Shown: one piece after another, positions 1-38,498 of the stretch
Layout of the letters: every line of letters starts with the position of its first letter
How positions within the stretch are numbered: the first letter of the stretch is position 1
Position numbers and translations under genes: made by a program
Notes under the pieces: model-generated
Told to the model about the DNA's origin: nothing
What the model saw: only the letters and a program-made list of their open reading frames with translations
Databases searched by the model: none
Origin: Saccostrea cucullata
Lineage: Eukaryota
DNA length: 60,309 nt
Direction: 5' to 3'
Assembly: GCF_032062105.1 (NCBI RefSeq)
Contig: NW_026934446.1
Coordinates: forward strand, 1-60,309

Positions 1-394
1 GGATCGGGTGCCATGGAGGAGTGAGCATCCCCTGCCCACCGGTCACACCCGCCGTGTGCTCGTTGTCATAATCAGGAAATAACGGAAAAAATCCGTGGTC
101 GATTCAGTGTATAAATAATGGACTAACAATTGGTATGAAAAACGTCAGTCAGCATTTCATTCAATGATAAAATGTATTTGCTGACAAGCTCATTGTATCG
201 ACCATAGAATTTACGAAATGATGACTTTAAACGAGACTGTTGATATTCTTGTTTCATCAACTTGCTTGTCAATAATTTACCTCGTTAAGAAATTGTTCAT
301 ACGTAGAGCATGCTCTTGCGTATCGAATCAACTGAGATATAAATACTCCGTATGCAGGTGATGAAGGTATATTGCTGCATAAGTAAGGGAAGTT

Positions 395-3300
395 TTTTTT
401 TTTTTTTTTTTTTTTAAATAAATTTATTAATAATTATGCACGCCCCATTACAATTTCTAACTAACCCGGGCCAGGATAGTTAGTATAACAAAAATAACAG
501 AACAACATATCTTAATTAAAGCATTTCTACAAATGACACCATCTTATTTTTATACATGTGAGTTTTTGTTAAATTCAGAAAAATGATCATATTGTTTTTA
601 ATATTTGTTTTGACATAAGAAAGTAACATATCTTTTGTTTCAGTTTTGTTCGTAACTCTACAAAACACTTTAAATTTATATATCTTATATGCTATGAAAG
701 ACACAAAGGTATTTAAAAATTGAATTTTGGAATTCCGTTCAGAATAAAAACCTAGGACGACATGCTTCCACTGTACATCAAAATTTAACACAGAACTCAG
801 ATTTTTCCACAGTATATGAACATGTTCACAATCAAAAATTAAATGTCTAATATCTTCAATTTCGTCACACATATTACATAAAGCAGAAGCTCTATATTTG
901 CATTTAAAAAGAAAACTGTTACAACACAATGTATTATTCAACAATTTGTAATTAAATTCACATATTCTTTTGTCATAGATATTCTTAACCTTGTTTCTAG
1001 ATATATCCTTCCAACTCTCTTGAGCAACAGAAAATAGTTTTTTATACATAAATTGATGGCCTGGAGCTTTAAATTTCTTAAAGAGTAAATTATCGTAAGA
1101 AAAATTACATTTTTTATCTTCAATACAATGTACACCATTTACAAAATTAAAATAACACTTCCCTATACTTTGTATGTATGCACAACAAGTCATATTGAAG
1201 ATTTTTTCTAGATTGCTGTTTTTATTATTTTGTATTCACACATCCACTTCGATTTTTGTTTTAAATCACCGGACAACTCTTGAAGAGTTTTAAATTTTCC
1301 ATTTTTGTTAAAAATGTCTTTAATATGTGTTATCCCACTTTTGATCCAATGTTTAAAACATATTGTTTTGTTTTCATATTTAAACATATTATTATTCCAT
1401 ATTGGTTGTTGAGCAAAACTTACATTAGACAATTTCGTTTCATCTATGTATCTTTTGCAATCGTTAAAACTGCAAAATACTTCTTTATAAAAAACCGGAA
1501 GGTTTGAAATGATTTGAAAGTCTGAGGGTTTTGTCTCTGATAATGTTAATAGATAATTAATATCAATATTAAGGCGATTTAAATATCCTCTTACTATTTC
1601 GCCGATTATACAGTTTTCTTTTATTAAATATCTAGTCCATGCTGCCTTTAAGGCCTTAAATTTCAATTCAATATCTATCACACCTATTCCACCATCTTCC
1701 TGTTTTCCGATCACAGTATCTCTTTTAATCCTATCTCGCTTTTTCCATATAAAGTTAAATATACTTTTCTTAATTTGTCGAGTATGTTCGGGATCGGGCA
1801 TTGGTAATATTGAAGCCATGTATATAAGTTGTGACGTAGCTAAAGAGTTAACGACACATGCTTTTCCAAAAATAGTCAATTTTCTTTTTTTCCAAGATTC
1901 AAAGAGTTTTTCCATATTTTGAAAAGTCTTTAGCCAGTTCAATTCATAACATTGAATTTTATTATGGCCAATGTGTATACCTAAACATCGAACAGCATCA
2001 TTTGTTACCTGGATACCTTCTATGTTAGTGTATTTATCTTTTAGACTACCCAATAATATACATTGTGTTTTGCTTATATTGACCTTTGAACCAGCGTGTT
2101 TACAAAAATCATTAACAGTCTTAACTGCAACCTTCAACGAAGATATATTTTTTAAAGCCAATGTGATATCGTCTGCATGCTGAATATTTTTAATATCCCT
2201 TTTCATATTTGAAACATTGATACCTTGTATTTCATTGTTATTTTTAATTTTTAAGGCCAGTATTTCTGCAACAAATAGATACAATAGAGCTGAAATAGGG
2301 CATCCTTGTCTAATACCTCTATTCATGCTACATGTTTTAGAAATCCAACCATTGTTTTTAATTCTGAATATTGGTTTATTATATAGAATTCGGATCCATT
2401 GAAGAAAATTATCACCGAAGTTAAATTTTTTTAAAACTTGAAAAAGAAAATTCCACTCAACCGAATCAAAAGCTTTTTCAAAATCTAAAAATAATAATAT
2501 TCCGTCTTTTTCATTTTCCATGCAGTATTCATAAATGTCTAAAATCAATCTTGCATTTATACCTATGTAACGACCTTTGATATATGCTGATTGTTCATTG
2601 CTAATTAATTTATCTATGACGCATTGTAATTTTTTTGCGAGAACAAAAGCTATAATCTTGTAATCGGTATTTGTTAAACTCAATGGTCTGTAGTTTTTAA
2701 GGTTATTCTTGTCTCCCTTTTTAAATAAAAGAGTGATAAGTGCCAATCGCTGAGAATATGGTAATTCGTCTTTTTCAAATACAGTTGACAACACATCATA
2801 AAAGAGAGGTCCAATTTTGTTCCAAAAACATTTATAAAATTCCCCTGGTAATCCATCTAATCCGGGAGATTTGTTACTTTTTAAATTGTATACCACATCC
2901 GAGCATTCATCAAATGTTGGAAATGTGTCACAAAACTTTCTATCGCGATCACTAAGTTTTGGACATTCAATGTCTTGTAGATATGAAGAAATATTGTTTC
3001 CATCAACAGATTTGCTTGTATATAAGTTTTCGTAAAAAAGACACATTTCTTGTAAAATTTCACTATTACTTGCAAAGGTTTTATTATTCTTTTTTAATTC
3101 AGTTATTGTATTATTCGTTTGATGTTTCTTTTCTAGACCTAGAAAGAAACTGGTATTTCGCTCTCCCTCACTTATCCATTGCGCTTTTGATCTTATTTGA
3201 GCTCCTTTAGCAATTTTATCATACATTGCATCTAGTTCTTTTTCTAGTTTTCGCTTTTCATTCATATTAATTTCTAGACTAGGCAAAGATTCAATTTTAT

Positions 3301-3889
3301 CGATTTTTTCCTCAAGTAGTTTTATTTTATATTTTATATTATGTTTGGATTGTTTCGCGTATTTAATAGAGTAATCACGTACACTTATTTTAAAAGTTTC
3401 CCATTTTAAAATTGGATCTAGCGTTTCATCAATGTTGTTATATAATTCCTCTATACCTTGTTTGTAATCATCATTCTCAAGGTGAGATACATTCAATTTC
3501 CAGTAACCTGCACCTCTATCTAATTTATTCAGATTTAAAGTACATTTAAGATATCTGTGGTCACTTAATCGAGTGTTATTATTATGAGTACCAGGAATTC
3601 TTCTGACAATGATATTTTTTACATTTTTTATAAAGTCTTTACTTACAAAAATATAATCAATCCTACTCTTTGGACAATTTTCTGCATCACACCAAGTGTA
3701 ACCGTTATTATTAGGATTCTTATTAATCCATACGTCGACTAAGTCGAATTTATTTACCAGTTTACTTAATTTTTTATTGGATTTGTCATTTTCTTTATCA
3801 AAATTGCAATTGAAATCACCTCCTACTATGATTGTACTATCTTGCGCAGAGAACGAAGAAATATATGTGTTTAGAGTTGATAGGAATGC
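395..3889 (-). mobile_element. 5'-truncated L1/Tx1-type LINE inserted in the PLE
   Basis: Poly(A) tail (T-run 393-415), AATAAA near 423-428 on the minus strand, 15-bp TSD TAAGTAAGGGAAGTT at 380-394 and 3890-3904. The empty site is visible in the sister PLE at about 29795-29815. Confidence 0.93.
516..3889 (-). pseudogene. LINE ORF2 (truncated AP-endonuclease, RT, C-terminal Zn-binding domain) with one frameshift
   Basis: APE motifs GGDFN, SRIDYIF, SDH; RT motifs KSPGLDG, NYRPLSL, LDFEKAFD, GIRQGCPIS, QHADD; CxxC..H..C motif (CNMCDEIEDIRHLIFDC) in ORF 516-1193. The two ORFs are in different frames, with the shift near 1210-1225. Confidence 0.9.
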
Positions 3890-4683
3890 TAAGTAAGGGA
3901 AGTTGACGATAGAAAAGTTAAAGTCATCACGTTTATCATATAGCCTGGTTGTTAGATTACCATTAGTGTCTTTTTCAAGTAAAATATTCAAGTATGAAGC
4001 AGAAGTGTCGGACTCTGTGGTATCTTTTATCTCAAGCTCACCACGATAAATCGTGTCGACGTAGGAATGGAAATTATCATTATTAATTGACAATACGTCG
4101 TCGATATATCTAAATGTCGAGTTGAAGGCCACAGCAAGTGTTTTCTTCTTCTCACGCAAAAGATTTTGCATAAATTCTGCTTCATATGAATATAAAAATA
4201 AGTCTGCTAATAACGGAGCGCAATTGGTACCCTGGGAATTCCAATAGATTGTTGGAATACCTGGTCTCCAAAAACCACATAGATATTGTCAATCAGAAAC
4301 TCAAGCATCTTCTTGATGTCAACTTCAGAGTACTTATGTGTGCAATCAGAATCTGTTTTAACAAAATAATTCTTCAAATGACCAATGACGAGGTAAGTAA
4401 ACTTACGAGTTCCATTTTTGTTGAAGAAGCAGCTGTCAATGATATCAAAAAGCCTGGATTTTAATTTGTCGTGGGGAATTGTTGTGTATAAAGTTGAAAA
4501 GTCGTAAGTTTTTATGCTGTTGATTTTTGTAAAGTCTTGTGATTTCAAATTGTCCAAAAGTTCTTTAGAATTTTTAAGTATCCACATCTGATTTACACCA
4601 CTTCTTGAACATATAGTTGTACAGTACTCTTGAAGTTTTTCCTTCACTACTGTCAATATTTTAGTGAGAAGTAACGAAAGAGG

Positions 4684-5145
4684 TAGAGCTGGGTATCGCG
4701 GCTGAAAAATCGTATCGCGATATATTGCAATATTATATTTTGTATTGCAATATATCACAATATAATTTTTTTAATAAATTTTGATTTTCATCAATGTTAA
4801 ATGAAAACACAAACTGAAATTACATGTATTCTCGAGTTGATATTGCAAGTTTTTTTGTGGCAAAACTTTAAGAATCAAGTTGAAATATTCAGATTCTGCT
4901 TTAACATGAAGGGCTTTCATGTAACAGTTGTCGTCTTTTCGTCTCTGACAGACATGTCTCTGGTTTCCGATCAAACTTCACGTTGCTTGCCGCCATATTT
5001 TACATTGGAAAGGGCAAATAACTCTTTTTGTAACAATTAATAGCATATCGAACCCGAACCGGTATTTACAAAAAAATACCGCGATACGTATTGTGAAGAA
5101 CGAAATCGGGATACACCGGTTAACCGGTAATATCGCACAGCACTA
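4684..5145. mobile_element. hAT-like non-autonomous DNA transposon (MITE) nested in the PLE
   Basis: 8-bp TSD GAAAGAGG at 4676-4683 and 5146-5153; imperfect TIRs TAGAGCTGGG / TAGTGCTGTG. It splits the PLE peptide CSTKPLS|LLLTKIL. Confidence 0.8.
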
Positions 5146-6759
5146 GAAAGAGGCTTGGTTGAACATTTACTGGAACCCGCAATGTATCTTTGTTTGTAAG
5201 GATTCTTATGAAGTTTCGGAATCCAATATATATAAGGTAGTTCAAATTCATTTTGGCTCTGTGGAATATTAAAAGTATTCAAAACTGACAGGTGATTTTG
5301 AAGAATTTCTTCCTTAGAAAGAGAACTATATGTATAAGTAGGATTACCACTTGTAGAATTAAACCCAAGTTCTTCTAGAATGCAATTTATATAATGAGCC
5401 TTACAAACGAAGACAATGTTGTTACCTGCTTTGTCGGCAGGAACCAATACGTATTGATCGTGTCATCTATCTAATTCTTTTTTCACTTCTGGTTTATTGA
5501 ACACAGAAGGATAGATGGTTTTCATTTTGCCCCTCAATCTTTTAATACGTGACTTTAACATGGATCTGATACATTTAATCCATTCTGACAAGGTGTCAAT
5601 GTCTTCTTTTTCATATCTGGCCCATCGTCTGGCGTAAGTGCTGGAGGCCTAACGGACCATAATTTGCTACATAATCTTTCTTTATTGACTTTGGTCTGCC
5701 GCAACCATTATTCGAATACAACGCATATTTTTCATGTATATTCGTGTTATTTAAGTCGTTGATTCATTATACCAAAGCTTAAGTAATTAAGAAGTATCAT
5801 ACATTTTTGTTAAGCTGTCATCTATTTTTTCTCACTAGGTACTTTTTTCTACGTTCTGATTTAATACAAAATATTTTTTTTTAACGGGAAGTACTTAAAA
5901 TTTCCTGTACGAATTAATCATAAAAAATTTAAGTTTTTCCTCTGCATTCCATATTTTTTGAAATGTTGCACTCTTACCATACTTATCTAAATAGCATGTT
6001 TGATTTCCATTGTAATAATAGATACCGTCTTCGATCTGAATATAGCTTAGACCTGTGTGTACCATTTTATAAATATAAACCCATCAAATCCTCTGGTGCT
6101 GTCTTTAGAAATTGTTTATTAGACGGGGTCACGTGATATATCAAAGATTGCAGAAATTGTTTCGATAGAAATATGAAAATTCTGTATCAAACTGAAGAAA
6201 GTGATATGAACTTTTTTCTAAATCAAGTTTATGTAGCATTTTGTAAATGCAAGCTCAAAATATTAATTATAATACACACTAGTACACAAATTACTCTCCT
6301 GCGTAGTATTACGACTTCGTATGCATCATCCATTGTTTACTTCCGGAAAAATATTAATTTGGATTACGTGAAATTCGGACGGTTCAAAAAGGTTTCTAGA
6401 CTTAGCAATTATTGAAATTTGTACATCAAATTAAATGAAAAACGCGAATTTGTATTATTTTTTTAGTATGTTGATTCTAAAAATTTTCAAAAATCGTTAA
6501 AAAAAAAACCCTCAAATTTGTGAAATCTAGCATGAAAATTATTTTGACCCCGTCTTTCAGTACTGTCTCAGTACTTTGATTTTTTTTATATATATAAAAA
6601 ATCTCAAACACTGAATGCCTTCAACTATCCAGTCAAAAAATGTAGTATAAAAAATGTCAAAATAATTTATGATTATTTCTTGATTGTGTTTATTTGAAAA
6701 TGTATACATATTTATTATATTTTTTTGCACTAATCGTGTCACCCTCTTTAAATAAAGTA

Positions 6760-6761
<2 letters not shown>

Positions 6762-6812
<51 letters not shown>

Positions 6813-6820
6813 ATTATTAT
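6762..6820. repeat. (ATT)n microsatellite
   Basis: Directly visible run of attattatt. Confidence 0.95.
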
Positions 6821-7139
6821 CTAATTGCATAACAGGCACTTATCACATATGAAAATGTTGATTCTCAATTTTTGAAACCTTATATACTATTGCAAATACT
6901 TTGCTGAGTAAATTTGTTCGAACCAAATTGAGTTTATTTAGTAACAAAATAGTTGAGTTATTATCCATCTGTTATAAATCTAATCAGACAAAATTTAAAA
7001 AAAAATGTTTTGAAAATAAGGATGTGATAAAAAAGTGTAATTGAAAATATTTTTTTTTAAATTAAAGGTTGTATTCATTTAATGGCGAAGATAGAGCCCT
7101 GACACTTCAACTATTATACGTAGTGAATCCAGTCAGATC

Positions 7140-7767
7140 ATGTCTTTATCCAAGTGCTACGCCTCTACACAAGAAACAACAAACACTGCTCGACTGGCGA
7201 GACTTATACTGGGTCCATGTACTGATGTGTTACGTGATATTCTAAAGACAGAAGTGAAGCCATCTGATTTGTCCAGAAAGGTTAAAGAATTTACAGATAA
7301 ACTTTCACATGGACAAAGAAATCCACTCAACAAAACACAATCAGAGATAATTTTCCCCAAACACACGAAACAATACAGTAGTGATTACTCAGACTTAGAC
7401 ATATCTTTTTTGTATTTACTTCTACGCAATGTAAGTAAAATATCATCACATTCCAAAGGTTGGGGAGAGATTCCGAATCCCGGAGACAGAAGCGTGGCAG
7501 CCAACATTGAAAGAATTCGCCTCATTAGAAACCAGTATTACGGACATTCAGCTGATTTGTCCCTGTCCGATTCAGAATTTAGACAGGAATGGCGGAACAT
7601 CCGGGACATTGTAATGGAGCTAGAGCGACACCTAGGAACAACCACGATATACCAGGATGCAGTCAACGAGATAAAAACCTGCTCCATGGACCCAGAACAA
7701 GAGAAGAAATACTTAGATTTACTTGGAGATATCAGAGAACTTCATACAACTGTGGATTATTTATCGA
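7140..7767 (+). CDS. Exon encoding the DZIP3-like HEPN domain (copy 1)
   Basis: ORF 7140-7775 with donor GTAAGT at 7768; Rx5H motif RNQYYGH; in-frame stop upstream of the ATG. Confidence 0.85.
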
Positions 7768-9607
7768 GTAAGTAATTATAATCCTTCCTGTTATTTATGG
7801 CTTAATGATTCTTTACTGGGAATATTTTGATGAATTTAGACAGGAATGGCAAAGCATTCAAGATTTTAGACATTACTTATCATAATACTTAATAAACATT
7901 TCATCAGATTGATAATTATCAGATGTTGAAATATAAAAATTAAAAAAAAAAATATCTAACTTTTAATTTATTGTATCTATTCCTATTTCGTAGGTAATAT
8001 GCTGATGATGCGAAGAGAATTGGCGCTTCACGGTAAATATCTCATATAAGTTGCATGTCATGATGATCGTATAAATGAGATGATCAAAATAGGAAATCCA
8101 GTTTGCCACAATGAAAAGTATTACTGATACTACAAAGCACATCAGTAATGCACGATATGTGGGATTTCATGAAATAGCAAAATGCGACAACTATGCTCAG
8201 GTTCTTAGAAAGAGTTTATACATTCCTGTTTCGCAATACATTCTTTAAATAAACAAACTCGCTGACTTCAGTCCATTATAAATTTTCTGATGAATATATC
8301 ATGAAATATAACTTCTTTTACAGATTTATTATTTTTTTGTAGATCCAAGACTTGCAAGAAGGATCGGTACGATAATATTAAGATAAAATAGATATCAAAT
8401 AAATAGCTTGATATTTCATATTTAGATATTCAAGGATGCCTACTGGTAACAAAAGACAACAAAATTTAGTATGTTAATAATGCATGTTTGTTTATTTTAT
8501 GGAAAAATTCCTGGTCTTAAAGGCCTAGATAAGATCCAGTACGCCATTAGAGCCTTAATGGCATAATGAAAGAAATTAATATCCGTGTTCCTTTCATTAA
8601 CATACTTATTGAAAAATGCGGAGGATGTATTTCCTTTTTTAATTTTCTTCATGAATTCGTTGATTTATATATCATTAATCATTTGTGTCAGTTCTGTGAA
8701 ATTTATTATTAGATGATTTTAACACCAGCAAGTGATCACATTTTGTCCAGCGTCTTCCTGTCTGTCCGTCTGTAAGCTTTTCACAATTTCAACAGGTGAA
8801 GGGGATTCAAATTTGTTCAAATGAAGTACCATGCCCAATTACAGGGTGAGACAATTAAGAATTTCTTTAAAAAATGAAATTCTCAAAAATCTTCCTCACA
8901 AGAACCACTCTGTCAGGAAAGATGAAACTCAGGTAGTATAAGTTCAAGTTTATTTAAATCATGACCTTTAGGGGTTAAGTGGGGCCACAATGGACGATCA
9001 CAGATTTGTAAAGGAATTTTTTTTAAAAAAAAAAGCATACTCAGGTGGTGTAGATTCATGAATTGTTCAAATTATGTCCTTGGGGCTAGGGCGGGCCACA
9101 ATGACCAATCAAAGTTTTACATAGATATATAAAGCAAAAAAAAAATCTTTAAAAAACCTTTTTCTTGAGAACAGCAAAGACATAATTCGTCATATTTATA
9201 TGGACGCATCCATGTTATAGTGAAGATTCAAGATTGTTTAAATCATGACTCCCGGGGGTGGGGTGCGGCCAGTATGGACAATCACAATTTTACATAGGAG
9301 TATTCTAAATATGAAAAAATATTCTCAAGAACAAAAAAGATGATTGGTTTTGTTTATATGGAAGCATCCTCGGGTAGTTTAGATGCAGATTTGTTACAAT
9401 CATGACCCACGCATTCTTACCCCCGGTTGGGTGGGACCACAATAAAAGTTCAAACTTATAGGGAAAAGTCACAGTTCGTCAAACAAATATGTAAGCGTTT
9501 TAGTTAGTATGCATTCAAGTTTGCATAGTTTGCTCAAATCAACCCCCTTTTTAGGATCGGGACCACTTAGGCATTTACTAAATCGTTTTTGTCCTAGGCA
9601 CAGTACC

Positions 9608-9639
<32 letters not shown>

Positions 9640-12600
9640 ATACAATATAATTCCTGTAGTCTAAATTGATTAATTATCTTTGAAGCTAAAACACTCTTGA
9701 CTTTAAGCAACAATACAATTTTGCACATACCATTGAGCATATCACCGTTAATTAATAAATAGATAAATTCTGGAATCTTAGAGACATTAAGTCCATGTTC
9801 CTTAAAGATAACTATCATTTCTTTTCAGAAACAACTAAGAAAATGATACAAAAACATTATGAAGCTGTTGGTCATCTATTTGTAAAAACTCATGCGTTTG
9901 AGAGAGCCAAGGAACTGTTGGACAATAACGGTTATGTCGTCATCAAGGGAAACCCCGGGACTGGAAAAACCACAAATGCCAAGATGTTGATGAAAGAATT
10001 GATGGATGAGGGGGAATCTCCTCTTCAGCTTTACAAGTTCAAAGACTTGTACGGTAACATATCACCGGGTGATGGTATAGTGGTATTTATCGACAATTTA
10101 TTTGGAGAGTTTTCTTTATCCAGCGATGAGATTCAAGAATTTAAAGCTAGAAAAGATATGATAAAGGTTTTAATTGAAAGTGACATAGATAATGAATCAA
10201 ACAAATTTATTTTTACACTTAGAAATGATATATATCAAGAATGTGTACAGAACCAGCGCGATGACAATTTTTTGATGTCGTCCTTGGTTGACCTGTCAAG
10301 CAAGGAAAATGCATTGATAAAAGAAGAAATATTACAGTTTTCAGAAAAATATGAGCTTTCTGAATACATAGAAGACAAAGAACTTATTCATAAGGTATAT
10401 GAAATGCCACTAACTATAGGATTTCCACAATGTTGTAAGTTAGCAAGAAGTAATGAAGCTTTTAAACAAAACGTATTTGTATTTGTAAAAAATGCAATGA
10501 TGTTTATGAGCGACTACTTCAAAACATTAATGAAAAAACAAACTGTAAAAACTGCTGTTTTAGCATATGTTCTCCTGAGTGGAGGAAAAGTAGATTTTGA
10601 ATTAATTGACAATCCCCGACTGGATTTAGAGATGAAGCACGCTTCTTTAGAATTTGTAGGTCTACAAAACTCGTATGTTAACGATTTCCAGGACAGTATT
10701 TTTTGTTTTGAGGGATTTTTAATTATACATGACACGATAGAAAACACCTACAGATTTTCCCATAGTTCAGTTCAGGAATCCCTTTTCAGTGTCTTGTTTA
10801 ATTTTGATTCTGAAAAAATTATCCAAATGTGTTATCCGTCCTTACTTCTTACATTGACGACATGTAAAAACCCCAAAAGTACACAAGTCTACATAGAACA
10901 AAGCTTGTTTAAATATGTTGTCCGCCGCGTTGCAAATATAATTGGAAAAAGGTCTGTGATAGGATATTCCTCAATATCATCACTGGATTTATGGAATGAT
11001 TCAAACTTCCATGAGCACGTATTACAATCTGAGGATTGCACATCGAAGTTTAAAACATGCCGTGATACCAACGGTGATTCAATGTTTGTGCATTTTTCGA
11101 AGGTGGGAAATAAGCGATGGGTTGAATATTTACTTCCGAATTCAAAAAAAAGACAAAGATACAGATCACTTAACGCCGCTTGCTCTAAAAATCAACCCGA
11201 CATTGTTAATCTCATTTTGTCAACAGATGTGGAATGTGATCTTCAAACATGTTTTTATGCTGTACAGAGTGGTAATATAGAGTTATTGCTCCGAATTTGT
11301 GAGCTTGTTGATGTTCATCAAATTTCTCATTCCTTACATCCTGTCTGGAGTTGTTTAAGACATAGCTTACTTCAGGAAATCTGTTTTATGCAACACACAC
11401 AATTAATTGAACACGTTCTAGAAAAATTTTCATTCCTTGTAGATATTAAGGACAGCCAGGGCTCTAATGCATTACAAGGTGCAGCAAGTTCTGGGGACAA
11501 ACATGCATTTAATCTTTTGTTAAAGTTTGGCTTTGATCCTTATGAAAAAGATCGAGACAATGGTCACACTGTTCTTACTTGTGCTTGTCAGGATGGAAGG
11601 ACAGACATGGTAAAATATCTTATTGAAACATATCCTGCATTACTCCAGGAACACACAGATGTTCGTGGAAAAAGTCTTCTGCATTGGGCAGCTTTCAGTG
11701 GGAATATAGATATGTTTGAATATATGCTTAACCTCTTTGAGAATGAAAATATATTACATGTACCAAGTGACAATAAACCAAAGGGATATAAAACAGATAA
11801 TTCAGGTCAATCTATCCTGCACGCTGCATGCAAAAATGGGCATTATGATATGTTTGAATATTTATTAAACAGATACCCTCAATTACTGGATGTCTGTGAC
11901 AATGATGGTAAAAATATTCTCCATTACACAGCCCTAGGTGGCAACATAGATCTTTTTAAGTACTTAGTTGAGAATTATCCCCATCTGTTAGACGTCAAAG
12001 ACAAATTTAGTAAGACAGTTTTGCATGACGCAGCCTGGGGAGGCAATGTTCAAATAGTAAAACCGTTGATTGAGAAAAAGATGGACATCAATGCCCTACA
12101 GGGAGATGGTGAAACAATTTTACATCTGTGCTGTCGTTCAGGCAAAATGGAGATGTGTGAGTATTTGGTCAAACATTTCTCGGATTTATTGGCAATCAGG
12201 GACAATAGAGGATGGACAGTGTTACATTCAGCTTGTAATGGAGGAAGTGTTGAAATTATTTCTTTTCTTATAGAAAAAGGGATGGATTTCAATGCCTTGT
12301 CGAAAGATGGTAAAACTATCTTGCATATAGCATGTCTCAATGGGAAGTTTGAAGTTTGTGAATACTTAGTTGAGAATTATCCCCATCTGTTAGACGTCAA
12401 TGACAAATCTAGTGAGACAGTGTTGCATGATGCAGCCCGGGAAGGCAATGTTCAAATAGTAAAACTATTGATTGAGAAAAAGATGGACATCAATGCGGTA
12501 CAGGGAGGTGGTGAAACAATTTTACATCAGTGTTGTCGTTCTGGTAAAATGGAGATGTGTGAGTATTTGGTCAATCATTTTCCAGATTTATTGGAGATAA

Positions 12601-14900
12601 GGGACAATGACGGATGGACAGTGTTACATTCAGCTTGCTATGGTGGAAGTGTTGAAATTGTTTCTTTTCTTATAGAAAAAGGGATGGATTTTAATGCCAT
12701 GTCAAATGATACTAAGAGTATCCTACATAGAGCCTGTATCAATGGGAAGTTTGAAATTTGTGAGTACTTAGTTGAGAATTATCCCCATCTATTAGATGTC
12801 AAAGACAAATCTAGTGAGACAGTGTTGCATGATGCAGCCTGGGGAGGCAATGTTCAAATAGTAAAACTATTGATTGAGAAAAAGATGGACATCTATTCTG
12901 TACAGGGAGACGGTGAAACAATTTTACATCAATGCTCTCGTTCTGGTAAAATGGAGATGTGTGAATATTTGGTCAATCATATTCCAGATTTATTGGAGAT
13001 AAGGGACAATGACGGATGGACAGCGTTACAATCAGCTTGCAGGGGAGGGAGTGTTGAAATTGTTTTTTTTCTCATAGAAAAAGGGATGGACATTAATATC
13101 TTGTCAAATAATGGTAGAAGTATCCTGCATATAGCTTGTCTCAATGGGAAATTTGAAGTTTGTGAGTACTTAGTTGAGAATTATCCCCATCTGTTAGACG
13201 TCAAGGACAAATTTAGTGAGACAGTGTTGCATGATGCAGCCTGGGGAGGCAATGTTCAAATAGTAAAACTGTTGATTGAGAAAAAGATGGACATCAATGC
13301 CCTACAGGGAGATGGTGAAACAATTTTACATCAATGCTGTCGTTCTGGTAAAATGGAGATGTGTGAATATTTGGTCAATCATTTTCCAGATTTATTGGAG
13401 ATAAGAGACAATGACGGGTGGACAGCGTTACATTCAGCTTGTAAGGTAGGAAGTGTTGAAATTGTTTCTTTTCTTATAGAAAAAGGAATGGACATTAATA
13501 TCTTGTCAAATAATGGTAGAAGTATCCTGCATTTAGCTGGTTTCAATGGGAAATTTGAAGTTTGTGAGTACTTAGTTGAGAATTATCCCAACCTATTAGA
13601 CCTCAGAGACAAATCCAGTAACACAGTGTTGCATGATGCGGCCTGGGGAGGGAATGTTCAAATAGTAAAACTATTGATTGAGAAAAAGATGGACATCAAT
13701 GCCCTACAGGGAGATGGTGAAACAATTTTACATCAATGCTGTCGTTCTGGTAAAATGGAGATGTGTGAGTATTTGGTCAATCATTTTCCAGATTTATTGG
13801 AGATAAGGGACAATGACGGATGGACAGTGTTACATTCAGCTTGCTATGGTGGATGTGTTGAAATTGTTTCTTTTCTTATAAAAAAAGGAATGGATTTTAA
13901 TGCCATGTCAAATGATAGTAAGAGTATCCTACATAGAGCCTGTATCAATGGGAAGTTTGAAATTTGTGAGTACTTAGTTGTGAATTATCCCCATCTGTTA
14001 GATGTCAAGGACAAATATAGAAATACAGTGTTGCATGATGCAGCCTGGGGAGGCAATGTTCAAATAGTAAAACTATTGATTGAGAAAAAGATGGACATCA
14101 ATGCCCTACAGCGAGGTGGTGAAACAATTTTACATCAGTGCTGTCGATCTGGTAAAATGGAGATGTGTGAATATTTGGTCAATCATTTTCCAGAATTTTT
14201 GGAGATAAAGGACACTGAGGGGTGGACAGTGTTACATTCAGCTTGCAGTGGAGGAAGTGTAGAAATTGTGTCTTTTCTACTTGATAAAGGATTAGATACC
14301 AATGCTTTGTCAAATGATGGTCAAAGTATTCTTCATAGAGCTTGTCTCAAAGGGAAATTTGAAATTTGTGGGTACTTAGTGAAGAATCATCCCCATCTAT
14401 TAAATATTAGGGACAATTCTAGTAACTCAGTGTTGCATGATGCAGCACGGGGAGGCAATGTTCAAATAGTAGAATTATTAATTGAGAAAAAAATGAACAT
14501 CTTTTCCCGACAGGAAGACGGTGAAACAATTTTACATCAATGTTGTCGCTCTGGTAAAATAGAGATGTGTGAGTATCTGGTCAATCAGTTTTCTGAGTTA
14601 ATAAAGATCAGGGACAATAGAGGATGGACAGTGTTACATTCAGCTTGCAGTGGTGGAAGTTTAGATATAGTTTCTTTTCTATTGAAAAAAGGATTGGAAA
14701 TCAATGTTTTGTCAAATGTTGGTGAAAGTATATTGCATATTGCTGGTCTAAATGGTAAACATGATGTTTGTAGGTTTTTATCAACAAATCACTTAGAATT
14801 GTTAGCAGTAAAAGATAATCAAGGTAAATCAGTGATAGATACTGCCGCTGAACAAGGTGACATAGACCTAATTCATATTTTCGGAGAACGCCGCTTTTAG
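7140..14900 (+). CDS. NLR-like protein: DZIP3-type HEPN domain - nSTAND3-type NTPase - ankyrin repeats (copy 1, 1920 aa); join(7140..7767,7994..8032,8343..8366,9829..14900)
   Basis: All introns are GT..AG and phase 1, and the spliced length is 5763 nt in one open frame. HEPN-like motifs DLDISFLYLLLRN, GWG and ERIRLIRNQYYGH; Walker A GNPGTGKT; Walker B VVFIDNLFG; more than 30 TxLH.A..G ankyrin repeats. Micro-exons are conserved in copy 2. Confidence 0.88.
8720..9639 (+). mobile_element. Helentron/HINE-like non-autonomous element with internal satellite-like repeats (intron 3, copy 1)
   Basis: GTCTGTCCGTCTGT microsatellite-like 5' part, repeated AAATCATGAC..GGGGCCACAATG units, 3' end CAGGTGAGCGATGTGGCCCATGGGCCTCTTGT with a short palindrome. 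Confidence 0.7.
9829..14900 (+). CDS. Large terminal exon: STAND NTPase plus ankyrin array (copy 1)
   Basis: Acceptor ttttcAG at 9827-9828; uninterrupted ORF to TAG at 14900. Confidence 0.92.
11961..14774 (+). repeat. Seven tandem 402-bp (134-aa, four-ankyrin) coding super-repeats
   Basis: Anchor TACTTAGT recurs at 11961, 12363, 12765, 13167, 13569, 13971 and 14373 (period 402). Confidence 0.95.
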
Positions 14901-17742
14901 GAACCTTCTTAATTCTTCAGCAATTATGTATTTTCACGAAAGAAATGCTGAGAAAATTTAATGAAGAAACTCTTTCATAAAATAAAAAGGGTTAAAATTG
15001 ATAACACTTACATTAAAATGTGATTTACCCCTTGTATTCATGCAGGAAAAAGAAGAAATTAATATATTTTGAAATAGACGAAGATAGTGAACACTGATCA
15101 AATCCTTTATACAAAAAAAAAATTGAGAACATTTCACAAACAAAAATATCTGAAATCTTCAACGGTTAGACGAGATGTCTGGCTAGATGAGAAGTTTGAA
15201 ATATTGACAATTTGTATGTATCTTTATTTTTACACTCTAGAAATTCTGGAAAATTTTTAATGCTCAGTGTATTAATTTAGATCCAAAGAGTCTTATTAGA
15301 TTTTTTTTACATAGTTTCATTTTTAGATAGATCAACATTTATTATCTTTACCTTTTAATATATTACTTTGTTTTACGTCCAACAAAGATCTTTTTTATAC
15401 AAATATGGGATTCAAATTGTAAAATGTACGCAGGTTCTTCAAATGATTCAGTACCAAATCTGTCATCATTATGCTTTTTAAGAGAATTCAAAACCATAGG
15501 AGACTTGAAAAATGTTATGAAAATAAAGTGCTCCCGCTTAAAAAAAGGTGTCTTGTAACCAATGATTTCAAAATTATGTGTGATAATCATATTCTTGCAA
15601 ATAGTCTTTCATTTATTATGCCGTACAGTTTTTGAATGCTATTAACTAAGATTTTATTTGTTTATGTAAATAAGATAGTTAAAATAAACCGAATTGACAT
15701 TTATAGTTCAAATGATATGTTAAAATCATTTAGAGCTAAATTATCGTTGTATATTCGAAAACTTCATTTATAAGAATGTGAAGAGTGTATAACTTCCTTT
15801 ATAATTTTATTTCGTTAGTATTTGAAGTGATATAAGCATGATAGGGATTTAGTTATCTAGTTTATTTCTTATCAATTCATCGTCTTATTATATGTTTTAT
15901 TTCATTGTTGTGTCGCAATTTATTTCTTTGTGAAATGATGAAATTTTCATCAAAGGAATGGAAAAATTTGTTGATTTTGCATATAAGTTGATTAAATTGT
16001 TTCTTTGAACGATTGAATGTGCAGCTTATACATCTTTTTATGTTTAATTTTGAGTATCGTCTGAATATTACAATTGATTGTATGTCATATTTTGCCTTTA
16101 TATATGAACTATATGCGCGGGAAATTGAATTTATACATAGAACTTTACCATTTACAACAGAAAATTATATATTGTAGTTAGAAGTTGTAGATTTTACTGA
16201 CAGACTACAGACTTACAGAGAGAGAAAAACTTTGATCAATAGTCCGCATGAAAGATATATGTACGTCACCATTCCCACCCACTATTTGTGAAAACTTTAA
16301 AAATAAAAAAAATACTTTAATTGACGTTTATGTCTTCAAAAATTCATACAATGTTATGGATATGGCACTTAAAATGTTCTTATTTCATTTTCATGAAGGA
16401 TAAAAGCAACGAATATACATTATATACAAATAAATTAATTTTGGGCAATTGGGGGAAGGGTAAAAATTCGCAGGTACTTTAGTCATGGTTTATAATGATA
16501 TCTGTACCGTTATCGATACCTAAAAAGGCTGCCCCCTTTTTTTCCCCAGCAATACTTTTACTATCGGAAATGTTCAGTGAAAGGCAGGTTGCGCCCCCCC
16601 TTAATACTACAAGAAATTCATATCAGGGAAATGTAGTGTCGAATACCTAGAATTAGGTTCTGAATGAAATTGGTATAGGAGGAAGACTTTTTTAGAGAGG
16701 AAAAAGCTGAAATGTCTTTATGAAGCACACAAAAAATTAATAGCTATAATAAATTGTATTTGAACAATACCTTATTCGTAAGTTTTCTATCTTATTGAAC
16801 GCAATTAAGTTGATTACAAACTGTACGTCGGGTTCGTAGCCACGATGATCTCAGTACGGAAAATACAGTTTTTATCGATTAACTCAACAGAATAAGATAT
16901 ATGTACACTGCATATCTATTTTAGTCTTTCGATGTATTTTGATTTTTCATTTACTCGTCCTCAACTTATGATACCTATCTGTCGCCTTGTCATGAATTTA
17001 AATTGGATACACATACTAGCTAACGATTAACTGCCATGTACCAATTGTCTACTTATGTAATCCTTTTATCAATAAATTTTAGTGTTTTTCCCTGCAACAA
17101 TATGTTTCTGATAAATTCCAAGCATATTTTGCTTGTTTTAAAAACTATTGTTTTATTGTATTCTAATTAAATAACATAATTTGTTGTAAAACTATTTAAT
17201 CAATTAACCCGTTAAATACAATATTTATAATTAGTTCTTGATTAAAACAATATAGCAAAAGGGACTCGACGTTCTAGAAGCGTCCGTCAATATTGAGATC
17301 GGTGATTGACGAAAATAATTTACACTTTTCGCTTTTTAATTGGTTACCAAGATTTATTAAATCAAGTTTTGATTGATTAATTCAGTGATGACATTTTATG
17401 AAATAAATAAAAGATTGTTTGTTGTCAGTTTCATTAAAATTTGACAGTAGCTAAGATCCGCCAACCGGAAATGCCACAATTCTCACGTTGTGCTCTTTCA
17501 TGGCTATTTTCAGAAAATTGAAGTAGTAATTTTATGAACGATACTTACTATCCGAGTGAAATCTGAATATAGTTTATGGACATCATTTTGTATGTAGTGT
17601 AGTATTAGAGGGTAAGTAAGAACTCTTGTACACCCGTTTCGGAGTTTATTTGCAAAATTTATTAATTTATAAGTATAGATATGGAAAAGAACTGTGAATG
17701 TTCTCCCGCCTACCTCTAGGGAAATTTTTAAAAGTTAACATA

Positions 17743-22275: not shown

Positions 22276-23289
22276 AAAAAAAAGATCAAAGATATGCATT
22301 CAGTGTGAAATATTCCTAAATTTTCATACATTGACATAGAATTAAAGTCCATTTACAATTTTATCTTAATTTGATTAGGTCGGTCAACACCTTCTGGATC
22401 TTACCACTTCCGCTGCCGCTAATTCCAATCACGCGCCCGTTGCTGTAAACAGTTGATCCGCCACTGATTCCGTAAGGAGTCCCACCATGGCCTCCCCTGG
22501 ATCCACCACTTCCAACAGAACTGAACCCTGATCCGCCACTGATATAACCAGATCCACCCGTCAGTACATTCATGATAACACCACCTGAACTACCGCTAGA
22601 AGAACCTGAAAAATCAATCATAATATATATTATAATTATGTAAATAGATTTCAGACAGTTATATGCATTCCGTAAAATTATAATTTTTGGTTATTGCATG
22701 ATAGTCTTTGGCGTATTAAATATTAAAAAAACATTTTGAGAAAAAGCCAATGGATATATTTGTCTTCCTCTAGAACAAAACACTTGTTACTATGATATAC
22801 ATCCAACATTATGGGAATCACAAGTTGATACTAGATTTGAAAATTATCTAAATCATGCATTATTTCGTTTTGTTTTCAGTTTTCAGATTGTAAAGTCTGA
22901 GTAGCGATTTTAAGACCGATCCTTCACTATATCTTCACCTGACACGTGACCTGACCAGCACGTGTGACTGCTATGACACTTCTGTGTTTGAGTGACAACC
23001 ATGGTTTGTTTTTGTGGGCGTGGCCTGTCTACATATATCGGTATTCCGTTCTCCGTCGTGTCCGGTTTATGTATATATACTGTTTGTTTTTGTGGGCGTG
23101 GTCTGTCTACATATATCGGAATCCCATTTTCCGTCGACTCCGGCTTTTGTATATATACTTTCTGAGGTGTAGGTTTCTGGATGAAGTATGTATGAGGTTT
23201 CTCACATCCGTTACATTCCGTCTGTGTTCCTGGAGGAAAAAAAGTTAAGAGCAAATTTTTTCTTTTATTATTGAAAAGTGAGATTAATA

Positions 23290-23955
23290 TGTAAGACTCC
23301 AAAGTCCGATGGTGACGCCAAAGTCCGATGGTCTCTCCAAACCCTGATGGTCTGCGCCAAAGTGCGATGGCTCGTTTCCTATGAGACGCGCGACGCTAAA
23401 GTGCGATTGTCTGACACGCAAAAGTCCGATGGTGCGGAGGAACAATTAACGTTTATGACGTCACAATATTACGACGTCATGATGTTATTCTACATTCAAA
23501 ATCCACTGATTCAGTATTCGTCTCAGATACGTTTTTACGGATATTGCTTTTTGGAGTGATATGGGTTAGTACTTGAACAGTTAAGTGCTTCTTCGAGCAC
23601 AACCGAGAGATTTTAAGGTTAGTCCTCGCACACTATTGGGCTGATTTAGATTAGTCCTGCACACATCTATGTTAGATAGGTTAGAGTTGATACTCATTGT
23701 TCGACTGATAAGTCTTAGTTTTGCACCTACATCTACAATACGAGGGTTTATCTTTGTATTTATGATATTTTGTATTTATTGATTGGCATGACGAGGCATC
23801 GAATTTTTACGCAGTAATACTATGACGTCATAGACGTTAATTGTTTTCTGCGCCATCGGACTTTGGCTTGTCAAACCATCGGAGTTTGGCGCAGACCATC
23901 GCACTTTGGCGTGACCATCGGGCTTTGGAGTCCCATCGCACTTTGGAGTCCTACA
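23290..23955. mobile_element. Ginger-like non-autonomous DNA transposon in an intron
   Basis: TGT..ACA termini, TIR TGTA(A/G)GACTCCAAAGT(C/G)CGATGG, 4-bp TSD AATA (23286-23289, 23956-23959), subterminal CCAAAGTSCGATGG arrays; absent from the paralogous intron (57659-57763). Confidence 0.8.
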
Positions 23956-24832: not shown

Positions 24833-26182
24833 TATAAGGCTTTTAGGCGACTTACCTGTTGTTTGTGTTTGCACGTAGCCCACCAAACATTCACAGGTAG
24901 GACAACCGTCCAATCCACACTTATAACCAACGTCACATGACGCAGGACAACTTAATGAGGTTGTACAATCCACTTTGTGTTGTATTACGACTTCATGTGT
25001 GGTGTACCCTATAATTTAGAAGGTCTGCTTTTCTCACAAATGCATTTTAATGTATATGTTCACCATGTATGTATTAAATTTGGAGTGTACAATATTTTTC
25101 AGAAATACATTTTACAACTAGTCATTAGCCCCATATGAATTCATGTATATAATAAAAAGACATAAATTTATGTAGCTTTATATTTTCAGTTTTCTGTTTT
25201 AAGAATTGAACTCCAATGTCCCTTTTCCTATCTGATCAGAACCTAATATAACCAACTGAGATTCACCCCTTGTTATTGCAGTATATATTTTTTTTATCAA
25301 GTTAGGAATGAAGATCGGGGCAGTTTTATACATATCCTTTCTCCTTTAATGGCATTATTCAGCATGATTTATCTGCATGTAATTTTTATCATTAATTTTC
25401 TGTATGTATCTCTGGTTCAATATTAACCTGAGGGTAGAGCACAATCACACGTAGGACACCCATCTGTTTCACATTTATATCCCACACTGCAGCCATAATT
25501 ACAGGTCAGGCTAGGACATGTCAAGGTCAAGACCTGTTGAACTACATAAAAATCACAATGTTAAATATAACTCGGTAGGTTTTCGTAGCAAGTAAAAAAT
25601 AAAACATGTACTGGAGGACGTTTATAGTGAGTAAGTGTATGATAGTTGTAATTAATTATATGCTTGTTTATAAGACTGAGTATTGCAGTGCTTGGAAAGA
25701 ATTAACAACAGAAGTAATTAGAATGATATTCAATTTAGATTTACAATGTAGAATTTATTTTAAAAACAATAATTAAAGCGATCAAAAGATCCCACTCACT
25801 GTATGTTACAGAGGGCTTTGTACATATACACGTCCCACAGCCATCTTTTCCTGTTTCCCCAATCTGGTAGTTTGATCCGCACCTTTCTAGACAAATCTGT
25901 TCTGTTTGGCACTCTTTTGTCGGCGCTACGACGTACGTAGTTTGAGTGTTAGTTCCAGTTGATACACCAACAGAGGGGCAGATCCCACTGTTCCCTCCAC
26001 CACCACCTATAAAACTTGATCCGCCAATAGTAGAAGACCCACCACTTACAGCTGTGGATCCGCCACCAGAAATACTAGATACGCTAAAGGGACTAGAACA
26101 CCCTGTGAATCCGCCACCAGCTCCAACTGACCCACCGCCTACACCTGATCCACCACTCATAGATCCTGGGTGTATATTTAGT

Positions 26183-35510: not shown

Positions 35511-35986
35511 TTATTGAACATCAAGCATCTAGAGAATTTGAGCTACAAAAGGAAATATTCTGTTAACACTTAAGAAAAAGAAATCAAGGATATATAATGA
35601 AAAACTTAAGTTATTGAAATGCATCATAAAACGTTTTAAAAATTATTAAAAAAAAATTATTCGTTTGGATATTTGTATGTAAAATTCCTTTGACGGTGTT
35701 CGAGTTTAATTTTTTTTTATATTAAATTCGGATCAACCCTCGTAGACTCATAAAAGTGCAAAGCCACACAACATGTTAAGCTCAGAAACGAAATGGATTG
35801 GTAAATATCAGTCTGTTGCAAATTGACCACATATATTGTAACATTTGCTTAGGAAAATAAACAATAAATCATTTTTTGAGTTATTGCAACTTATTATGAT
35901 AATTCTTTTAATTTTAGACATTTTAAGACAAAGACAGAGTCCTAACACTTCACAAATAAATTAAACGTATTGAAGGCATCCACATT

Positions 35987-36614
35987 ATGTCTTTATCCAA
36001 GTGTTACATATCAACACCAGAAACAACAAACACTGCTCGACTGGCGAGGCTTATACTGGGTCCATGTACTGATGTGTTACGTGACATTCTAAAGACTGAA
36101 GTAAAACCCTCTGATTTGTCCAGAAAAGTTAAAGAATTTACAGATAAACTTCTACATGGACAAAGAAATCCACTCAACAAAACACAATCAGAGATCATTT
36201 TCCCCAAACCAACAAATCAATACAGTGGTGATTATTCAGACTTAGACATATCTCTATTATATTTACTTCTACGCAATATAAGTAAAATATCACAACATTC
36301 CAAAGGTTGGGGAGAAATACCTAATCCCGGAGACAGAAGCGTTTCCGCCAACATTGAAAGAATTCGCCTTCTAAGGAACCAGTATTACGGTCATTCAGCT
36401 GATCTGTCCCTATCCGATTCAGAATTTAGACAGGAATGGCGAAACATCCGGGACATTGTAGTGGAGCTAGAGCGACACCTAGGAACCAATACGGTTTACC
36501 AGGATGCAGTCAACGCAATAAAAACCTGCTTTATGGACCCAGAACAAGAGAAGAAATACATAGACTTACTTGGAGATATCAGAGAACTTCATACATCTGT
36601 GGATGATCTTTCGA
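35987..36614 (+). CDS. Exon encoding the DZIP3-like HEPN domain (copy 2)
   Basis: Open frame closely similar to 7140-7767; donor GTAAGT at 36615. Confidence 0.8.
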
Positions 36615-37574
36615 GTAAGTAATTATAAGCCTTCATGTCATTTCTGGCTTAATGATTCTTGCATCATTTTACTCGGAATATTTTAATGGATTTAGACAGG
36701 GCTAGGGAAATATCCAAGATTTTAGACATAACTTATAATAATTCTTAATAAATATATCAACAGATTGATCATTATCAGATGTTCAAATATGTAAAATATT
36801 TTAAAAATCTAACTATAGATTAATTTTATCTATTCCTGTTTTTAGGTAATGTGCTGATTATGCAAAGAGAATTGGTGCTTCATGGTAAAAATCTCATATA
36901 AGTATAATGATGATCGTATAAATGATGATTAATACAGGAAATTCAGTTTGCCACAGTGTTAATTTTTAAACAATGAATAGTTTTATTGATACTACAAAGC
37001 AGATAGGTGATGCACGATAAATAGGATTTCATGAAATGAAAAAATGCGACAATTATGCTTAAGTTTTTAAAAAGATATAAAGCATTCCCATCTCTCAATA
37101 CATCCTTTAATCAAACAAACTCACTGTCTTCAGTCCGTTATAAATTTTCGGATGAATTTATTTTGAAAAATAACTTCTATTAAAAATTTTTTTTTTGTAG
37201 ATCCAAGAGTTGCAAGAAAGATCGGTACGATAATATTAAGATAAAATAGATATTAAATAAATAGTTGGATATTTCATATTTAGATATTCAAGGATGCCTA
37301 CTGGTAACAAGAGACAACAGAATTTAGTATGTTAATAATGCATGTTTGTTTATGTTATGGAAAAATTCCTGGTCTTAAAGGCCTAGATAAGATTCCTTAC
37401 GAAATTAGAACCTTAATGGCATAATGAAAGAAATTAATATCTGTGTTCCTTTCATTAACATACACATTGAAAAGTGTGGAGGATTTATTTTCTTAAATTT
37501 TTTTTATGAATTTGTTGATTTATATATCATTGATGATTTGTGTGAGTTCTGTGAAATTTATTATTAGATGATTG

Positions 37575-38498
37575 TAACACCAGCAAGTGATCTTTTCTGA
37601 AAACATTTTGTCCGGCGTCTTTTTGTCTGTCCCTCTGTAAACTTTTCACAAATGTGTTAAAATGAAGGACCATGCCCCATTTCAGGGAGATTTAGTTAAG
37701 AATTTCTGAAAAAATGCAATTCTCAAAATCTTCATCTCAAGAACCACTCGAACAGGAAAGATGAAACTTATGTGGAAACATCCTCAGGTAGTGTCAATCA
37801 AGTTTATTTAAATCATGACCCTTAGGGGTTGGGTGGGGCCACAATGGGCGATCACAGGGATATAAAGGAAACATCTTTAAAAATCTTCTTGAGAAGCATA
37901 CTCAGGTAGTGTAGATTCATGATTGTTCAAATTATGACCCCCGGGGCTAGGGCTGGGCAACAATGACCGATCAAAGTTTTACATAGATATATAAATGAAA
38001 AAAAATCTTTAAGAACACTTTTTTGAGAACAGCAAAGACATAATTGGTCATATTTATATAGACGCATCAATGTTGTAGTGAAGATTCAAAATTGATCAAA
38101 TCATGACTCCCGGGGGCAGGCTGGGGCCACTATGGACGATCACAAAATTTACATAGGAGTACTCTATATATGAAAAATCTTCTCAAGAACAACAAAATAA
38201 TGATTGGTCTTGTTTAGATGGAAGCATCCTCGGGTAGTTTAGATGCAGAATTGTTACAATCATGACGCACACATACTAACCCCCGGTTGGGTAAGACCAC
38301 AATAAAATTTAAACTAATAGGGAGAAGCCGCAGTTCGTCAAACAAATATGTAAGCGTCCTTAGTTTGTATTCATTCAACCTTGGTCAGTTTGTTCAAATC
38401 ATACCCCCCTTTTGGGATCCGGACCACTTAAGCATTTACTGAATTTTTTTTTCCTAGGCACAGTGACAAGGTGAGCGATGTGGCCCATGTGTCTCTTG
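37575..38498 (+). mobile_element. Helentron/HINE-like element (intron 3, copy 2)
   Basis: Paralog of 8720-9639, ending GGTGAGCGATGTGGCCCATGTGTCTCTTGT. Confidence 0.7.

Follow-up and report, generated by a model that had tools for sequence, protein, structure and literature searches.

A contig of the hooded oyster, Saccostrea cucullata, carries an intact four-exon gene on its forward strand, at positions 7140-14900 of the 60,309-base stretch that was analyzed (the window, which contains no N). The gene encodes a protein of 1920 amino acids (aa), in which an N-terminal HEPN domain of the DZIP3 type is followed by a short linker, a STAND-type nucleoside triphosphatase (NTPase) of the nSTAND3 family and a long C-terminal ankyrin array. 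With somewhat better than even confidence, we read it as a cytoplasmic protein that works as an intracellular sensor in the style of NOD-like receptors (NLRs) and bacterial Avs proteins. From the gene anatomy, motif conservation, purifying selection, family size and variation in repeat-unit number that were observed, we infer the functional steps of a sensor-activated RNase, which is plausible for this protein, and nothing found contradicts it.

The searches of the gene were run exon by exon. The four exons sum to 5763 nucleotides (nt), corresponding to 1920 codons and a stop codon. All three introns are in phase 1, with GT donors and with acceptors consisting of a polypyrimidine tract and AG. 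Exon 1 (7140-7767, +) begins at the start codon, ends just before a GT donor at 7768 (GA/GTAAGT, the slash marking the exon end), and encodes the whole HEPN domain. Exon 2 (7994-8032, +; 39 nt) and exon 3 (8343-8366, +; 24 nt) are phase 1 mini-exons that encode the linker. The canonical AG/GT sites of exon 2 are kept in a tandem copy of the gene further along the window (copy 2), and the depth of reads from RNA run X18 equals its length; exon 3, also with canonical sites, is present in the public gene model, in three annotated paralogues (P0002-P0004) and in copy 2. Exon 4 (9829-14900, +) follows a tttcag acceptor, with the junction between 9828 and 9829, ends in the stop codon at 14898-14900, and codes for both the NTPase module and the ankyrins. 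In the 1701-codon open reading frame (ORF) at 9795-14900 (+), Pfam placed nSTAND3 at the start and ankyrin families over the remainder. A first-pass annotation of the window, made from the sequence alone, had proposed a spliced 1920-aa ORF with an effector-STAND-repeat architecture. The four exons with their canonical splice sites reproduced this ORF exactly, and the architecture was confirmed, with HEPN, nSTAND3 and ankyrin all matched.

The NCBI model of the locus is XP_062578831.1 (P0001, 1707 aa), publicly named 'serine/threonine-protein phosphatase 6 regulatory ankyrin repeat subunit B-like'. It starts at a Met within the mini-exon 7994-8032 (MMRRELALH), continues through the mini-exon 8343-8366 (DPRLARRIE) into exon 4 (TTKKM...), and is 100% identical to the gene product from 9829 on. 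Because introns 2 and 3 are used in this model, both are independently annotated. Intron 1, which joins the HEPN exon, is annotated with the same linker and junction peptide in the paralogues P0002, P0003 and P0004, whose identity to the gene is 82-84% in the NTPase part and 90-94% in the HEPN part. A relative from S. echinata (P0009) has the HEPN domain joined directly to the NTPase exon. We consider it very likely that the HEPN exon is joined to the NTPase exons at the S. cucullata locus as well. The full gene corrects the public annotation, in which the HEPN exon was left out and the protein was misnamed from repeat similarity. No contigs encoding XP_062578831.1 are on record.

RNA reads from three raw oligo-dT runs and one contig run were mapped over 6600-11900, skipping 6751-6825 as a repeat. 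Reads of run X18 fall upstream of the ATG, on exon 1 and over the beginning of exon 4. In the three 177-nt bins over introns 1 and 2, the X18 depth was 0.12, 0.09 and 0.14, equal to 21, 16 and 25 bases, which are the values given by one read on exactly the two mini-exons (22 + 17 nt and 24 nt). This pattern is consistent with the removal of introns 1 and 2, as indirect evidence. A stretch upstream of the start codon (6954-7139, +) is also transcribed, with an X18 depth of 1.66 in the bin 6954-7130 that continues into exon 1, and is probably a 5' untranslated region contiguous with exon 1, although the reads are few.

The HEPN assignment is carried by the ORF at 7140-7775 (+), which matched Pfam HEPN_DZIP3 (PF18738) with an E value of 3.5e-31 and 108.4 bits (cut-off 27). 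The match spans profile positions 2-144 of 144, corresponding to nt 7263-7712. Translation of 7527-7547 (+) gave the Rx5H motif RNQYYGH (R130, N131, H136), bearing out the earlier description of a DZIP3-type HEPN domain that retains this motif. A search among 1.84 billion cluster representatives returned 1459 HEPN relatives at E ≤ 0.001. Alignment of 78 diverse relatives showed that the motif residues are kept almost throughout (R130 in 74, N131 in 76 and H136 in 76), with an R-to-H spacing of x5 in 48 sequences, x4 in 21 and x6 in 3. The AlphaFold2 (AF2) model of the domain is all-helical, with a mean confidence (pLDDT) of 88.5. In the ESM Atlas, the HEPN fold (TM 0.59-0.77) heads cnidarian NACHT-LRR, mollusc Roc-COR, rotifer TPR/Sel1 and chordate DZIP3/TTC3 proteins, and the same HEPN domain is found on NLR-like proteins in corals and Aplysia. 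Occurring atop such varied animal scaffolds, the fold is a recurrent N-terminal module of animal switch proteins. The DZIP3-type HEPN domain of the gene probably cuts RNA.

The nSTAND3 family (PF20720) matched aa 29-180 of the ORF 9795-14900 with an E value of 5e-29 and 101.4 bits (cut-off 27.2). Pfam, AF2, VIA and Foldseek together place the STAND NTPase module, consisting of a nucleotide-binding domain (NBD), a helical domain and a winged helix, at 9831-10895 (+). Translation located Walker A (GNPGTGKT) at 9948-9971 (+) and Walker B at 10080-10097 (+; VVFIDNLFGE from 10080), and alignment located an invariant arginine (Arg131 of the module) at 10221-10223 (+). Among 39 relatives, the Walker A Lys is kept in 39, the Walker B Asp in 37 and Arg131 in 39. 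The AF2 model of 9831-11474, with these 39 relatives in its alignment, has a pLDDT of 91. VIA aligned module residues 1-355 to NLRC4 (Z 14.5, 294 residues), MalT (13.7), NLRP3 and NOD2 (13.4), NRC1 (12.9) and SAMD9 (12.4). The top PDB match of the model in Foldseek was EfAvs5, a SIR2-STAND protein (E 3.5e-7), followed by human SAMD9 (E 1.9e-6, TMq about 0.4) and then by NLRP2, NLRP3, NOD2, NLRC4, Avs4, MalT and Apaf-1. Outside the molluscs, the nearest clusters in the Atlas are nSTAND3 proteins of bacteria. A search of the NTPase profile against PDB chains gave only ankyrin and generic P-loop matches.

The winged helix runs straight into ankyrin repeats, because VIA aligned the model residues from ~330-365 to 548 to ankyrin proteins. 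The array occupies 10923-14897 (+), with degenerate repeats directly after the winged helix, and then 34 canonical repeats up to the C-terminus (by motif count, spacing 33-34 aa), giving a total of at least 34. Pfam Ank families match over the array with E values down to 5e-234. The last 28 of the 34 canonical repeats are made up of seven in-frame super-repeats of 402 nt, each containing four ankyrin repeats (11961-14774, +; Tandem Repeats Finder period 402, 7.0 copies, 88% match, 0% indels). The very long C-terminal array described earlier is thus present, with at least 34 repeats including these seven units. Pairwise dS (synonymous divergence) between the 402-nt units is 0.12-0.69, with an overall ratio of nonsynonymous to synonymous change (dN/dS) of about 0.31. 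Positions that contact targets in designed ankyrin binders vary more than framework positions do (0.87 versus 0.33 bits, p 1.3e-5). The omega at these canonical binding positions is 0.73, versus 0.24 at the framework, a value reached by 5 of 300 random codon sets. The number of super-repeats differs among paralogues of 86-96% identity, with seven in this gene, about 5.5 in L001 (C14493:26800-36799), about 2.5 in copy 2 and about 2 in L002 (C8178:9900-19899); L001 and L002 are close paralogues or possibly haplotigs. The ankyrin array of the gene is the longest among its close paralogues.

Copy 2, the tandem paralogue at 35919-42122 (+), has the same exon structure and is 86% identical including the introns, with its Pfam domains on split ORFs. 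It keeps all splice sites, and relative to the gene it has 29 indels in introns and 2 in exon 4, while exons 1-3 are free of them. Compared with copy 2, the gene has a dN/dS of 0.16 in the HEPN exon, 0.23 in the NTPase and 0.33 in the remainder, and is under purifying selection (0.16-0.33). The frame of copy 2 is broken by a 1-nt insertion at 39370 (compare 10513 in the gene), leaving ORFs at 38655-39467 and 39388-41994. This points either to a young pseudogene or to an error in the assembly. Identity is uneven along the two close paralogues. L002 is 96-97% identical to the gene from exon 1 to 8527 and 91.6% beyond, and a 101-nt piece of the intron is 100% identical in C14493, where the L001 locus overall is 92.6% identical. 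This mosaic suggests exchange or gene conversion among copies.

A search of the genome (1.17 Gb, 23,869 contigs) gave at least 891 first-look candidates for HEPN_DZIP3 and at least 675 for nSTAND3. The best 150 HEPN candidates were scored, and all were above the cut-off, with stop codons in 4 of the 150. For nine of 21 scored nSTAND3 exons, a scored HEPN exon lies on the same strand, 1.3-3.3 kb upstream, and the same NTPase follows HEPN in relatives down to about 20-25% identity. The gene, intact and ordinary, belongs to a lineage-specific expansion that runs to hundreds of genes.

Such fusions have been described before. Anantharaman et al. 2013 (PMC3710099) listed the DZIP3/hRUL138 HEPN family, in which Rx4-6H is 'mostly conserved', in fusions with TPR, RING, ankyrin, CARD, NACHT, Death and LRR domains, with expansions in Nematostella, oyster and Capsaspora. 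Expansions in Crassostrea combine HEPN, STAND and ankyrin domains (Kaur et al. 2021, PMC8195603). The pearl oyster has 202 such HEPN proteins, of which 194 contain the motif, and over 50 are on NACHT proteins (Takeuchi et al. 2022, PMC9646362), and bivalve HEPN-NLR-like proteins were suggested to degrade viral and transposon RNA (PMC9646362). The gene resembles these bivalve and cnidarian fusions in its N-terminal PF18738 domain, its Rx4-6H motif with Asn after the Arg, its STAND NTPase, its C-terminal repeats and its expansion in an oyster. The published bivalve accounts lay stress on NACHT with LRR, TPR or WD40, whereas the gene here has nSTAND3 and ankyrin. Because ankyrin is among the fusions listed in 2013, the gene is a member of the DZIP3-HEPN fusions and not a new variant. 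Both the architecture and the hypothesis of RNase immunity are already published (PMC3710099, PMC9646362). The first-pass annotation had noted similar bivalve combinations and knew of no functional characterization of them. The RNase-defense idea that it put forward had itself already been proposed.

Among systems of known function, canonical NLRs (NLRC4, NLRP3, NOD2) share with the oyster protein an NBD-HD1-WHD fold (helical domain 1 and winged-helix domain; Z 13-14.5 over 283-296 residues) and the effector-NTPase-repeats layout. They carry a death-fold adaptor at the N-terminus, whereas the oyster protein has a putative enzyme there and is without Pfam NACHT or LRR. It was not classed as a canonical NLR, since Pfam found no NACHT (PF05729) or LRR at E 0.01, and its likeness to NLRs is confined to layout and fold. 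In animals, RNase control by a STAND protein has been proven with human SAMD9 (PMC10246899). SAMD9 and SAMD9L (PMC10246899, PMC12680541) are animal antiviral proteins whose N-terminal RNase, a tRNA-Phe anticodon nuclease, is under the control of a STAND-type NTPase with repeats, and the oyster protein shares the NTPase fold. They differ in their AlbA-type tRNase, in their SAM, SIR2-like and OB domains, in having TPR, and in being single or low-copy as opposed to hundreds of genes. An assignment to SAMD9/SAMD9L was rejected, as only the NTPase fold is shared and the Pfam scan found none of the other SAMD9 domains. RNase L was cited in the first-pass annotation as coupling ankyrin sensing to a HEPN-related nuclease, and this agrees with Table 1 of PMC3710099, in which an ankyrin ligand sensor accompanies a HEPN-superfamily (KEN) RNase activated by dimerization. 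Its order is the reverse, with the ankyrins N-terminal, a pseudokinase in the middle and KEN at the C-terminus; it has 9 ankyrins binding 2-5A versus at least 34 here, and its nuclease belongs to another HEPN family.

The bacterial Avs proteins likewise combine an effector, a STAND NTPase and an alpha-helical repeat sensor. Avs5 is a SIR2-nSTAND3-repeats protein, with its NTPase in the same Pfam family, nSTAND3 (bioRxiv 10.1101/2025.07.08.663546; PDB 9jap, 9nc9). Avs5 has a SIR2 effector and a TPR/Sel1/PPR sensor and is prokaryotic, whereas the oyster gene has HEPN and ankyrin and is eukaryotic with introns. VIA ranks NLRC4, MalT and NLRP3 at least as high as Avs5, and common descent with Avs5 is not established; the homology of the two NTPases is a lead only. 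Membership of Avs/AVAST was rejected, as no PADLOC Avs model matched and the gene is eukaryotic and spliced. The oyster protein is an analogue, of which the NTPase is possibly a distant relative.

HEPN RNase sites are composite, such that two Rx4-6H motifs must come together, and STAND NTPases oligomerize on ligand binding to the repeat domain. These two properties, with the precedent of SAMD9, are the grounds for the proposed mechanism. At rest, the protein would be a nucleotide-bound monomer, and the lone HEPN domain would be inactive because it supplies only one of the two motifs required. A pathogen-derived or danger-associated ligand would bind the concave face of the ankyrin array, freeing the NTPase for nucleotide exchange and oligomerization. 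The N-terminal HEPN domains would thereby be brought together into active RNase sites, which would cut viral and/or host RNA, so that translation is shut down or the infected cell is killed. Of the sequence from ligand through NTPase oligomer to RNase that was originally put forward, the architecture, the conservation of the HEPN motif and the NLR-like fold are borne out; the functional steps are entirely inferred.

Several results weigh against the reading of the gene as a sensor-activated RNase. For the HEPN domain, Foldseek of the model gave no match at E ≤ 0.001 in PDB or viral structures, and no solved-structure relative was found by sequence or profile among PDB chains. In an exhaustive VIA structure search, the top hit was the HEPN domain of Csm6 from S. 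mutans (Z 8.4 over 122 residues, root-mean-square deviation 5.0), a Z in the range that the tool calls unreliable for helical bundles. The top 50 held 7 further HEPN-type entries (E. italicus Csm6, HepS, sacsin HEPN, AbiF, 1wwp, LsoA and 2hsb), and the fold of the model is supported by this enrichment and not by a decisive score. The structural match to the HEPN fold is weak, with a best Z of 8.4. An RNase assay of any DZIP3-type HEPN was not found in the literature. For the NTPase, which had been described as having intact Walker A and B, Walker A was confirmed and the Walker B Asp is present, with the small qualification that the next residue is Asn (in the family, D in 23 of 39 and N in 16 of 39), and ATP hydrolysis may therefore be slow. 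The nSTAND3 hidden Markov model (HMM) gave matches in all 14 well-known control genomes, above the cut-off in 7, and for this reason kinship to Avs5 is not established at the sequence level. PADLOC matched no Avs model in the search, its only candidate being PDC-S73 (E 1.7e-10), with weak mad8 and TRIP13.

Further such points concern the array and the locus. Positive (diversifying) selection on the ankyrin binding positions was considered and rejected, as their omega of 0.73 is elevated but below 1, and these positions are variable in ankyrin proteins generally. XP_062578831.1 omits the HEPN exon, so intron 1 is not in the model and PF18738 is absent from it. The read depth on the exons is 0-3, with the gene covered in only one (X18) of the three oligo-dT runs, and no splice junction reached the listing threshold over 6600-11900, the reads being too sparse. 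The proposed RNA-seq check of the junctions gave only the indirect match of X18 depth to the mini-exons.

The main rival explanation keeps the architecture but makes HEPN a homotypic adaptor or an RNA-binding module, which, once the receptor has oligomerized, would recruit free HEPN-only proteins or other partners, or would only tether RNA. We judge it unlikely. In the protein library, many of the relatives have HEPN alone and are short, at about 190-280 aa, although these entries may be fragmentary gene models. HEPN also sits at the N-terminus of NACHT-LRR, Roc-COR, TPR/Sel1 and TTC3/DZIP3 scaffolds, the position of adaptors such as CARD, PYD and Death in NLRs, and DZIP3 of vertebrates is known as an E3 ligase that binds RNA and not as an RNase, which counts for an adaptor. 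Against this stands the R-N-x-H signature, which about 95% of diverse members retain, as do 194 of the 202 proteins of the pearl oyster (PMC9646362); conservation of this degree is hard to explain for a pure adaptor. It is improbable that the HEPN exon is unjoined at the locus, leaving a 1707-aa NTPase-ankyrin protein as in the NCBI model and perhaps a separate 211-aa HEPN-only product. This would agree with the start of XP_062578831.1 within the mini-exon 7994-8032 and its want of PF18738, with the 211-aa ORF obtained when exon 1 is read into the intron, where a stop follows 2 codons on, and with the absence of a listed junction read. However, the GA/GTAAGT donor is canonical and kept in copy 2, all exons are in phase 1, and the very same HEPN-to-NTPase join is annotated in paralogues of 82-84% identity. 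The unspliced 211-aa product is absent from the public protein collection, the X18 depths fit the removal of introns 1 and 2, and HEPN exons lie repeatedly 1.3-3.3 kb upstream of nSTAND3 exons genome-wide.

The gene might also be a leftover of a birth-and-death family, intact but effectively silent and en route to a pseudogene, without a function of its own. The depth of 0-3 in three oligo-dT RNA runs, the frameshift already present in the tandem neighbor copy 2, and the stop codons in 4 of the 150 best genomic HEPN exons all point this way. We nevertheless give this explanation a low probability, as the 5763-nt frame is open, the dN/dS is 0.16-0.33 in the comparison with copy 2, with a value of about 0.31 between ankyrin units, and immune receptors are often low-expressed, induced-only or cell-type-specific. 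A housekeeping ankyrin scaffold acting as a protein phosphatase 6 (PP6) regulatory subunit, as in the public name, is highly improbable. Its sole support is that automatic NCBI name, derived from ankyrin-repeat similarity, whereas the full model contains a STAND NTPase and HEPN and has hundreds of fast-diversifying paralogues, unlike a conserved phosphatase subunit. PP6 ankyrin subunits are not known to carry a STAND NTPase or HEPN. An ankyrin-only scaffold orthologous to ANKRD28/44/52 is effectively refuted by the STAND NTPase and the in-frame HEPN exon.

The preferred reading of an NLR/Avs-style sensor can be extended to a bolder form, which we regard as possible but doubtful. The family would then be a true animal counterpart of bacterial Avs, with an NTPase homologous to the Avs5/SAMD9-type STAND clade. 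Its arrays would have been diversified by gain and loss of 402-nt units and by exchange among paralogues, each for a different viral or parasite protein, and the paired HEPN domains of the oligomer would cut tRNA or other RNA in a response resembling abortive infection, in an animal without interferon.

Bivalves have no adaptive immunity, and viruses such as OsHV-1 cause mass mortalities among them, yet their genomes contain hundreds of genes with this architecture. If one member of the family proved to be a ligand-activated RNase, the Avs/SAMD9 principle of a STAND switch on a nuclease would be extended to a large germline receptor repertoire of invertebrates. It would also be the first biochemical function for a DZIP3-type HEPN, a domain that is also carried by humans. 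The gene adds a clean, intact, full-length example, and leaves the published hypotheses unchanged.

Intron 3 contains high-copy interspersed repeats (8724-9785), outside the protein, on which the RNA depth rises into the hundreds. Reads on them depart from the locus at 8795, 8826 and 9604-9639, continuing as unrelated sequence or T-runs, and a 101-nt piece of them has 271 first-look candidates in the genome. ARAGORN found no tRNA-like part, which would indicate a short interspersed nuclear element (SINE) origin, in the window. ORFs at 22910-23302 and 25741-26160 matched no Pfam family. Past the stop codon by 81 nt, a pattern search found a candidate polyadenylation signal (AATAAA, 14981-14986, +), which is a weak candidate because this hexamer is common in the AT-rich DNA here. 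A (TAT)21 microsatellite (6758-6820) precedes the start codon by about 320 nt. Farther upstream, at 516-4758 on the reverse strand, is a retrotransposon of the long interspersed nuclear element (LINE) type, with a 987-aa ORF containing endonuclease/exonuclease/phosphatase and RVT_1 domains and a 225-aa ORF containing zf-RVT.

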